Positions 45,388-46,404 of a stretch of DNA of 64,000 nucleotides are shown piece by piece. The stretch lies in the sequence record PQ657772.1. The stretch is one strand, 5' to 3'. How positions within the stretch are numbered: position 1 is the stretch's first letter; each line of letters starts with the position of its first letter. A program made the position numbers and the translations under genes. The notes below the pieces were generated by a model, which was given only the letters and a program-made list of their open reading frames with translations, was not told the origin of the DNA and ran no database searches.

Positions 45388-45945
45388 TTATTTATTTCTG
45401 TTCATTGCTGCAAGCATTTCATTGCGGGTTTTATGTGCTACCGCCTGTCCTTCGATGGCTGTTGGGTCACCAACTGATTCAGGTTTCTTAGTTTTAAGGT
45501 TTAGATCGATTTCCATCTTATCTTTCTTGAGTTGAAGATCTACTAATTTAACGTCAGAATCAATGATTTTTGCATGAGCATCGAGAGCAATTTTTAACAT
45601 AGAGTTTGCAGCGTTAATCATTTCTGCTGCAAAACGGTCTTCACAGTTGAAAGCACGGTCGAAAATATCTTCAAACTTACGTTCTGCCATCTGTGCTAAA
45701 CGATCTAATTGAGTTTTTCTTGCTGTAATATCTGGAAGTTCACGCAACTGAACACGCATAGCTTTCAATTTTTCCATTGCAGCTTTTGCCTCTTCTAGTG
45801 AAATTTCAGTTTCACTCTGTTCATCTTCGTCATCCTGATACAAATCCATCTCTGTATCTTCTTCAGGCTCCTGGCCTGTCATTTCCATCCATTGTTTAGC
45901 ACTAGGTAATCCCAGTGCTTCATCTACTTGTTGTTTAGGTTTCAT
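45388..45945 (-). CDS. Candidate small terminase subunit (T4 gp16-like)
   Basis: Acidic N-terminus, helical core ([15 protein letters not shown]...[12 protein letters not shown]) and C-terminal TRNEMLAAM helix; inferred from pattern and position. Confidence 0.45.
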
Positions 45946-46404
45946 TTTTTATATAGATTCCTTTCTGTAATGATTTTAAATTCCAATCCGGTTATTTTTG
46001 CAAAATTCCATTGCATATGCCCATTTTGATTGGTTAATCGCAACGGTGATTTTGTCTTTCTTGGATTTAGCCATTTCCATGTGACATTGTTTGTACGGTT
46101 TAACTTCCAGTACTTGAGCATGTTGCTTACCATCTGCACCAATATAAAGTACATAAAAATCAGGCCAGTACTGATGAACTGCATTATCAACTGGATTCAC
46201 GTAAGGAATACTAAATGGCTCTACACTCCACTCTATAACCGCAGGGTTGTTGTCTAAAGATATCATGATATCCTTTTCCCAAGAACTACGGTATATAGGT
46301 TGGTTATTACTTTTATACTTTTGTATATTTTTTATAGGGAAGATACCTTGAGCCTGTTTGGAGTTAGTAATCTTCGCTGGGTTAAACTGCTGGTTAAATG
46401 CCAT
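45942..46404 (-). CDS. Head completion nuclease (T4 gp4-like, TnsA-type fold), with +1 frame break at CGG 45990-45988
   Basis: [30 protein letters not shown]. Frame 0 stops at 45976; the canonical C-terminus GLEFKIITE lies in the +1 frame, whose TGA overlaps the next ATG. Confidence 0.85.

Follow-up and report, generated by a model that had tools for sequence, protein, structure and literature searches.

Probable completion of a gp4-like nuclease gene of Asteriusvirus phages by a conserved +1 frameshift at a rare CGG codon

To our knowledge, very few +1 frameshifts are utilised in bacteria and their phages. Here we describe a candidate for such an event in Escherichia phage EC.P1, a jumbo myovirus of the Asteriusvirus group, found in a 64,000-nucleotide (nt) stretch of its genome (PQ657772.1; hereafter the window). 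The element in question is a gp4-like nuclease gene whose annotated open reading frame (ORF) encodes 142 amino acids (aa) and whose family-type C-terminus lies in the +1 frame. From sequence comparisons, we consider it quite likely that this nuclease of the core Asteriusvirus clade (EC.P1, 121Q, PBECO4, Turkey5/JNE01, A4 and others) is expressed via a conserved +1 translational frameshift at AAU_AAC_CGG_A. By analogy, such a recoding event would belong to a known class, the +1 frameshifts at slow-to-decode codons, with Ty1, Ty3 and glass-sponge mitochondria as the closest counterparts.

In Ty1 the shift occurs at CUU_AGG_C, where the Gly codon of an abundant tRNA overlaps a rare Arg codon, and Ty3 (GCG_AGU_U) shifts with little or no re-pairing of the P-site tRNA (PMC5009743). 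At the phage site, too, a slow 0-frame sense codon would occupy the A site, and the weak re-pairing of Ty3 resembles that expected of AAC to ACC here. The two elements are eukaryotic, shift at the gag-pol junction and make an extended fusion product, whereas the phage site is bacterial, precedes the last 15 codons of a small nuclease gene and has no identified 3' stimulator, and its shifted product would be the ancestral full-length protein. In glass-sponge mitochondria, a single inserted T (rarely C) 5' of GGA makes the almost unused UGG_A or CGG_A; these sites are conserved, both flanks are under purifying selection, and they have been read as a pause combined with an abundant tRNA-Gly (PMC2267718, PMC5009743). 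This is the same architecture as that of the phage site, with an insert before GGA that creates a near-unused 0-frame codon. The sponge sites are served by mitochondrial ribosomes and a reduced tRNA set, whereas the phage site is a single site in a single gene, would be read by the cytoplasmic ribosome of E. coli and is far easier to test experimentally.

On E. coli ribosomes themselves, a +1 shift is known at prfB (CUU_UGA_C) and another has been reported at yehP (GUU_CGG_C), the latter with CGG as the slow A-site codon. The yehP shift was verified by mass spectrometry, and CGG came out of the FSscan study as a favoured codon in the A site for shifts to +1, with AAT_CGG_C among the listed candidates (PMC2790909). 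The prfB site differs from ours in its stop codon, its upstream Shine-Dalgarno (SD)-like stimulator, its good CUU to UUU re-pairing and its autoregulation, none of which is evident here, and the shifted yehP product is truncated and of unknown relevance, whereas here the shifted product would be the conserved one. Among phages, Listeria phages PSA, A118 and A500 use +1 frameshifts in capsid and tail genes at CCC_UGA and ACA_CCC (PMC5009743), and so resemble the EC.P1 gene as phage genes with +1 frameshifting in a rare-codon or stop context. Those sites rely on CCC slippage with re-pairing and on a stop codon or pseudoknot as stimulator, and they supply a second, longer structural protein beside the main one; in EC.P1 the shift would restore the ancestral end of an enzyme.

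An extra base and a switch of the selected frame

Read on the minus strand, the 142-aa ORF ends ...FCKNN-CGG-ATT-GGA-ATT-TAA. The initial annotation of this DNA had frame 0 running through Arg (CGG) and IGI to a stop at 45976, and its coordinates and translation proved correct. It had also proposed that skipping one base yields the family ending and a protein of 153 aa; 138 residues in frame 0 and 15 in +1 indeed add up to this length. Continuous relatives have AAT followed directly by GGA, GGC, GGT or GGG, and the window has AAC-C-GGA, with the extra base at position 45990 or 45991.

We collected 21 distinct shifted haplotypes from GenBank phages and from ENA, JGI and Logan assemblies, and found the same AAC_CGG_A arrangement in 21/21. 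The stretch AAC-C-GGA-TTG was likewise unchanged in every haplotype, the E-site codon was AAU in all but one (AGU there), and the Gly codon was always GGA, whereas all four Gly codons occur among the continuous relatives. Carriers comprise the EC.P1 type (fEgEco12, WPEC5 and others), the 121Q/PBECO4, Turkey5/JNE01, UE-S1/ph0011 and A4 types, and Salmonella SD phages. Over the 1.7 kb compared, the window itself was 100% identical to EC.P1, about ten other coliphages (genomes of 350-385 kb) were 99% identical to the window, and 121Q, PBECO4 and their relatives were 82-85% identical. The two main 142-aa forms of this protein (P0002 and P0003) are indexed in 226 and 74 assembly-collection blocks, respectively (NCBI, ENA, JGI, Logan). 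Exact-pattern scans of IMG/VR and JGI metagenome contigs for further shifted alleles returned only 121Q-type copies and chance matches.

The initial annotation had raised the prospect of a sequencing artefact at 45990/45991, and a one-base indel late in an essential gene is indeed the classic signature of a sequencing or assembly error, in this case an extra C absent from the phage DNA. About 30 phage genomes, however, sequenced independently by laboratories in many countries, have the same base, as do many metagenome and Sequence Read Archive (SRA) assemblies, its carriers fall in deeply diverged sub-lineages with mutually saturated synonymous sites, and their annotators all reached the same 142-aa or 151-aa ORF. 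An artefact is in effect excluded, with next to no probability left to it.

Protein trees built from the frame-0 part alone placed the shifted sequences in one clade, with support of 83/74 that rose to 92/90 when the closest continuous relatives were added. The tree requires a single change of state and nests no continuous sequence within the shifted clade; this points to a single origin of the extra base, with no revertant among the sequences sampled. In the upstream part, the proportion of synonymous differences (pS) between sub-lineages of the shifted clade was 0.70-0.81, which is saturated, and the ratio of nonsynonymous to synonymous rates (dN/dS) was 0.01-0.03 in the frame-0 segment where dS could be estimated. 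Judged by this divergence, the shifted arrangement is old.

We next compared substitution patterns on the two sides of the extra base within the shifted clade. Codons 1-138 held 130 variable sites among 414, 99 of them at frame-0 third positions, and 76/102 upstream variable codons were purely synonymous in frame 0 as opposed to 1/104 when read in +1. Downstream of the extra base the pattern was reversed. Seven distinct DNA versions of the tail, and one further combination, all encode one invariant 15-residue peptide. Its variable sites (GAA/GAG, TTT/TTC, ATC/ATT, ATT/ATA, CTA/TTA and TAT/TAC) were synonymous in +1 in 6/6 cases and in frame 0 in 0/6 (P = 7.7e-4 under random placement); five are +1 third positions, and the sixth is the synonymous first position of CTA/TTA. 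Between the window and 121Q only 4/48 tail positions differ, although neutral sites are saturated.

These patterns bear on the reading in which the 142-aa protein is the sole and sufficient product and the tail an untranslated relic, kept as the initiation region of the downstream gene. Such a reading could draw on the catalytic PD...EVK motif, which lies entirely in the frame-0 part, on an AAGGA in the tail about 13 nt upstream of the next ATG, and on the lower variability of the tail DNA relative to the gene body (6/48 versus 130/414 sites). Codon periodicity is not expected of a non-coding element, yet all variable sites of the tail are synonymous in +1. A relic should also have decayed at the saturated neutral rate (pS 0.7-0.8), yet 14/15 of its residues match those of a continuous relative (P0004), in whose structural model the segment absent from the 142-aa form makes up the fourth strand of the core. 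Because the tail is nearly invariant while neutral sites are saturated, an untranslated relic is not tenable as an explanation, and we assign it little probability.

The substitution patterns also locate the shift. Codon 136 (AAA/AAG) varies synonymously in frame 0 and would change K to R in +1, and codon 135 (TGC/TGT) behaves alike. By the third codon past the extra base (GAA/GAG), selection is already in +1, the only frame in which this change is synonymous. Across the intervening RIGI stretch, 0/4 frame-0 third positions vary, compared with about 72% upstream. Because frame 0 is selected at codon 136, +1 is selected at GAA/GAG and the RIGI third positions are fixed, we bracket the putative shift to AAU_AAC_CGG_AUU (45985-45996), codons 137-140, before the frame-0 stop. 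Together these comparisons support an arrangement that is ancient and monophyletic, with each frame under purifying selection, as would befit a conserved recoding site and not an error or a null allele. They also bear out, along with the homologue alignments below, two expectations of the initial annotation: that the true C-terminus is in the +1 frame after AAC-CGG, and that a true null would be unexpected.

The gp4 family ending and its predicted place in the fold

The 142-aa ORF matched Pfam PF08722 (Tn7_TnsA-like_N) with an expect value (E) of 8.6e-17 and 61.9 bits (cut-off 26.5), and PHROG 218, 'head closure', with E = 1.2e-39; the matches end 7 (Pfam) and 17 (PHROG) profile positions before the C-terminal end of the profile. 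The catalytic PD-(D/E)XK columns D82, E100 and K102 (P0004 numbering) are present in the frame-0 part as WPDF...LEVKP. Profile matches and homologue alignments thus support the identity given in the initial annotation, a gp4-like head-completion nuclease of the TnsA-like PD-(D/E)XK type. A role in head completion and head-tail joining is known for T4 gene 4.

We searched and aligned the frame-0 and +1 pieces separately. More than 25 continuous homologues from jumbo phages and metagenomes (148-164 aa) end in C-x-x-N-G-[LI]-E-F-K-x-x-T-E-x-x-L-Y, in which G139, E141, F142, K143, T146 and E147 are invariant or nearly so, and the nearest relatives of the shifted clade have a single continuous ORF of 150-156 aa. 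The C-terminal element G-[LI]-x-F-[KR]-x-x-T-E is missing from the 142-aa ORF and occurs only in the +1 frame (45945-45989), so that the family ending is obtained only if a +1 frameshift is allowed. The +1 piece was identical at 14/15 positions to the continuous relative P0004 (76% identity to the window protein), was matched equally well by P0056 and P0057, 153-aa proteins that cluster with the window protein at 90% identity, and aligned with the C-terminus of the T4-type gp4 of phage T2; agreement of this kind with the family ending is no coincidence. The comparison with gp4 orthologues called for in the initial annotation thus found its proposed ending, continuous in the relatives and in +1 in the window.

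To place this piece in the fold, we predicted the structure of P0004, the continuous relative, with AlphaFold2. The model (predicted local distance difference test, pLDDT, 88.9) contains a long helix at 115-137 followed at the C-terminus by a strand at 141-145 and a helix at 147-151, with pLDDT of about 93. Its best PDB matches were the TnsA structures 1f1z and 1t0f (probability 1.0, TMq 0.52-0.54); a sequence search of the PDB gave no match. From the strand, the helix and the TnsA match we predict that the +1 piece supplies the last strand, plus a short helix, of the alpha-beta-beta-beta-alpha-beta PD-(D/E)XK core.

The window protein shares with T4 gp4 and the TnsA N-terminal domain its family homology (PF08722, PHROG 218), the PD...E-x-K motif and the C-terminal element, with TnsA as the best structural match. 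It departs from the T4 type in sequence (only about 30% identity to T2/T4-type gp4), in its neighbours (a tail tube gene and a PHROG 16202 gene, where the T2 record has gene 53 and gene 2) and in being split over two frames. A second intact gp4 paralogue in the same genome was considered and rejected: the protein P0034 is found in other phages, at the syntenic position, and tblastn gives only one place in EC.P1.

Our tblastn searches found gp4 genes in 2,525 phage records, and two observations on other phages emerged from them. In phage CMSTMSU (MH494197.1), a 386-kb relative, there are two tblastn places for a gp4-like protein, the best of which spans residues 22-142 alone; a duplication, a terminal repeat and a mis-assembly are all possible causes. 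In several T4-like phages, including UPEC03 (MW250785.1), Margaery (KT381880.1), O157 typing phage 6 and WFbE185, the gp4 match ends at about residue 107-108, and in UPEC03 the matched region carries the annotation 'putative mobile endonuclease'. These matches suggest that some lineages have a homing endonuclease inserted within gene 4.

Decoding at the candidate shift site

We counted codons in the 54 long ORFs of the window (19,712 codons). CGG was the rarest codon, occurring in frame only twice, whereas the remaining two frames of these genes contain it 51 and 153 times. The other in-frame CGG (37789) lies between a terminator hairpin and the SD sequence and ATG of the true start of its ORF; since it precedes this start, the window has no genuine CGG codon other than the one at the junction. 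In phage Sharanji, of the 121Q type, a 64-kb sample gave 2/17,857 codons, one of them upstream of an annotated start. GGA, the overlapping +1 codon, is used 198 times in the window, or 10 per 1000 codons. The heptamer AACCGGA occurs eight times in the window against 3.0 expected (2/100 shuffles reach 8), with only the gp4 copy in the AAC_CGG_A phase; this excess is probably chance.

CGG is decoded only by tRNA-Arg(CCG). This tRNA is present at about 639 molecules per E. coli cell (PMC2790909). In the mechanism we favour, a ribosome whose P site holds peptidyl-tRNA-Asn on AAC would pause at CGG, awaiting the scarce host tRNA-Arg(CCG), and during this pause Gly-tRNA(UCC) would pair with GGA one base downstream. 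GGA could be reached if the C is occluded, as has been suggested for Ty3, or if tRNA-Asn re-pairs weakly on ACC. The ribosome would then read 15 further codons in +1, to the TGA on the ATGA overlap, and release a 153-aa protein with a complete core. Ribosomes that decode CGG would stop after RIGI and release a 142-aa form without the last core strand, which probably lacks activity or stability. That no revertant appears over so long a divergence suggests that enough full-length protein is made, or that a low or tunable level of nuclease is useful.

Several points weigh against this mechanism. Moving from AAC to ACC, tRNA-Asn (anticodon QUU) keeps 2/3 of its pairs, and such poor re-pairing means that the site is not classically slippery. 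We found no obvious stimulator: the 86-nt region folds worse than its shuffles (-3.1 kcal/mol, z = +1.6), the shift region has no Rfam match, and no SD-like sequence was seen within 20 nt upstream. A stimulatory element is not a universal requirement of programmed +1 frameshift sites. The exact event could also differ, as residue 139 would be Gly if the shift precedes decoding of CGG and Arg if CGG is read and the A then skipped, and a -2 event with one extra residue may be an alternative route. The selection test on the tail has only six variable sites, and the initiation region of the next gene may add to the constraint on a tail that varies less than the gene body. In the literature, the virion proteome paper on phAPEC6 does not mention the gp4-like protein, and we found no proteomic, ribosome-profiling or reporter results on the gp4-like product of these phages. 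Nor did we find a published report of this frameshift in searches of the available literature on 121Q, Asteriusvirus, head completion and the phAPEC6 proteome.

The same reading-frame change might instead be achieved in the RNA, if polymerase slippage or editing dropped one base and standard translation followed. Transcriptional slippage mends indels in some bacterial and phage genes (PMC5009743), and these jumbo phages encode their own transcription factors. Known slippage, however, needs long homopolymer runs, and the junction has none longer than CC and GG. We rejected slippage in the A5 run close upstream: several members have AAG within it, a change that is synonymous only in frame 0, where the lysine codon is preserved. 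The extreme rarity of CGG, moreover, fits a ribosomal mechanism specifically, and we regard correction at the RNA level as improbable.

We also weighed other sites and routes of translation: a prfB-like shift at the frame-0 stop, a quadruplet-decoding tRNA, diffuse frameshift suppression, or separate initiation of the tail at UUG. The stop context AUU_UAA_A does resemble CUU_UGA_C and would give a product of the same length. In A4-type phages, however, CAA replaces the frame-0 TAA (TTT to TTC, synonymous in +1), creating a 151-aa frame-0 ORF, and the tail is kept all the same; the frame-0 stop therefore has no bearing on what keeps the tail in use. The substitutions that fall between CGG and this stop likewise fit +1 and not frame 0, and on these two grounds we rejected a prfB-like shift. 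Diffuse suppression can be appreciable in E. coli (PMC10861913). Initiation at UUG has no SD-like sequence seen before it, and a 14-residue peptide acting in trans is implausible.

Phage tRNAs might favour such routes, as 121Q-type phages carry seven, including tRNA-Asn(GUU), tRNA-Arg(UCU) and tRNA-Gly(UCC). Those of Sharanji, however, were all called by ARAGORN as ordinary tRNAs with standard triplet anticodons, none of which reads CGG, and the window contains no tRNA gene. We also rejected the phage tRNA-Gly(UCC) as a general helper of the shift: its gene is found only in the 121Q/PBECO4/UE-S1 sub-lineage and is undetectable in EC.P1, Turkey5 and A4. With no tRNA gene in the window and the Gly tRNA undetectable in these three, a phage tRNA is not a general requirement. 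Taken together, another site or route is improbable as well, and a ribosomal shift at AAC_CGG_A continues to be our preferred explanation.

Among the tRNAs of Sharanji, we noted a tRNA-Ser with the unusual anticodon ACU (L019 9471-9562; OR545507.1 95470-95561). The Sharanji genome is reported to encode a tRNA-specific adenosine deaminase (PMC11895373), and a change of A34 to I would alter the reading by this tRNA.

A more speculative extension, which we think rather unlikely, is that AAC_CGG_A, in a lineage that hardly uses CGG any more, serves as a regulatory device that senses tRNA-Arg(CCG) or arginine in the host, or shifts that the phage induces in the tRNA pool, and so sets the ratio of an inactive or modulatory 142-aa form to active 153-aa nuclease. 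Because only shifted ribosomes would terminate on the ATGA overlap, such a device would also tune coupling to the downstream gene. If this were true, E. coli ribosomes would for the first time be seen to use a natural +1 recoding switch that works at a sense codon (a 'hungry codon') and has a defined function.

The frameshift, if real, would offer a compact model of about 10 nt for out-of-frame A-site decoding at a rare sense codon, long conserved and with no obvious stimulator. Phages of the shifted type grow on E. coli K-12, Sharanji on strain MG1655, which would allow its study on the best-understood ribosome. For evolution, it would mean that a frameshift in a core morphogenesis gene can become fixed and persist when codon usage has already made the new 0-frame codon nearly undecodable, an evolutionary solution also seen in glass-sponge mitochondria.

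Gene neighbourhood, annotation and further observations

Features of the gp4-like gene and its neighbours are collected in the table.

Table. Coordinates of the gp4-like gene, its parts and the adjoining genes in the window
Feature	Position	Strand	Basis or remark
Tail tube gene, 364 aa, upstream of the gp4-like gene	46405..47499	minus	PHROG 13438 at 2e-225
gp4-like nuclease ORF, 142 aa (frame 0)	46404 down to 45976	minus	ORF list, Pfam, PHROG
Frame-0 segment, codons 1-138, ATG to AAC (Asn138)	45991..46404	minus	Carries PD...E-V-K catalytic motif
Candidate shift site AAU_AAC_CGG_A	45987..45996	minus	E-site Asn, P-site Asn, rare Arg codon, +1 GGA
0-frame CGG codon, Arg139 of the annotated 142-aa product	45990..45988	minus	
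+1-frame segment, 15 codons, conserved C-terminus (GLEFK...LYKK)	45945..45989	minus	Starts with GGA 45989..45987
Frame-0 stop TAA, end of the 142-aa product	45978..45976	minus	
+1-frame stop TGA	45944..45942	minus	Overlaps downstream ATG 45945..45943 as ATGA
Downstream co-oriented gene, 185 aa, function unknown	45388..45945	minus	PHROG 16202

The order tail tube, gp4-like nuclease, PHROG 16202 gene is kept in all relatives, shifted or continuous. The start of the 185-aa PHROG 16202 gene is coupled to the +1-frame stop of the gp4-like gene, and the ATGA overlap described in the initial annotation was confirmed and is found in the continuous relatives as well. We saw no promoter-like or terminator-like sites on the coding (minus) strand between these two genes.

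In all database records examined, the gp4-like product is annotated with a length of 142, 139, 138, 120 or 151 aa and never with slippage. The 142-aa (or 151-aa) form appears in GenBank and RefSeq for about 30 phage genomes, including the 121Q and PBECO4 reference genomes, and many E. coli-labelled assemblies list it likewise. The real product is most likely the 153-aa trans-frame protein. In A4-type records (P0001, P0051 and P0070; phage A4, L057) the 151-aa protein is named 'TnsA endonuclease N-terminal domain-containing protein', and its last 13 residues, which end in EFI in one version, are out-of-frame sequence. Salmonella 'SD' records contain shortened or fragmented gp4 ORFs of 138 aa, 120 aa (SD-2_S15, SD-1_S14) and 34+108 aa (SD-6_S16; P0064, P0066), in genomes of 310-326 kb compared with about 350 kb in relatives; the shortened ORFs may reflect assembly trouble, not biology.

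The PHROG 16202 gene has no Pfam match, and its names disagree among relatives ('terminase small subunit' in fEgEco12, 'heat shock protein' in WPEC5, 'hypothetical' elsewhere); our searches gave no support to any of them. PHROG 16152 and several records give the name 'Hsp70 heat shock protein' to a 181-aa protein at 44278-44823 (minus strand). This protein lacks a Pfam match and is much too short for Hsp70, so that the label looks propagated.

Elsewhere in the window, we observed a clean intrinsic terminator past a 469-aa gene (37727-37830, minus strand), made up of the hairpin GAGAACGGAA-AATT-CCGTTCTC and a T-run behind it. Beyond the terminator lie a TATAAT-like box and then a GGAGAG SD sequence and ATG. 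From this order, the mechanically called 109-aa ORF at 37496-37825 starts too far upstream, and its real start is ATG GAA CAA about 100 nt downstream.

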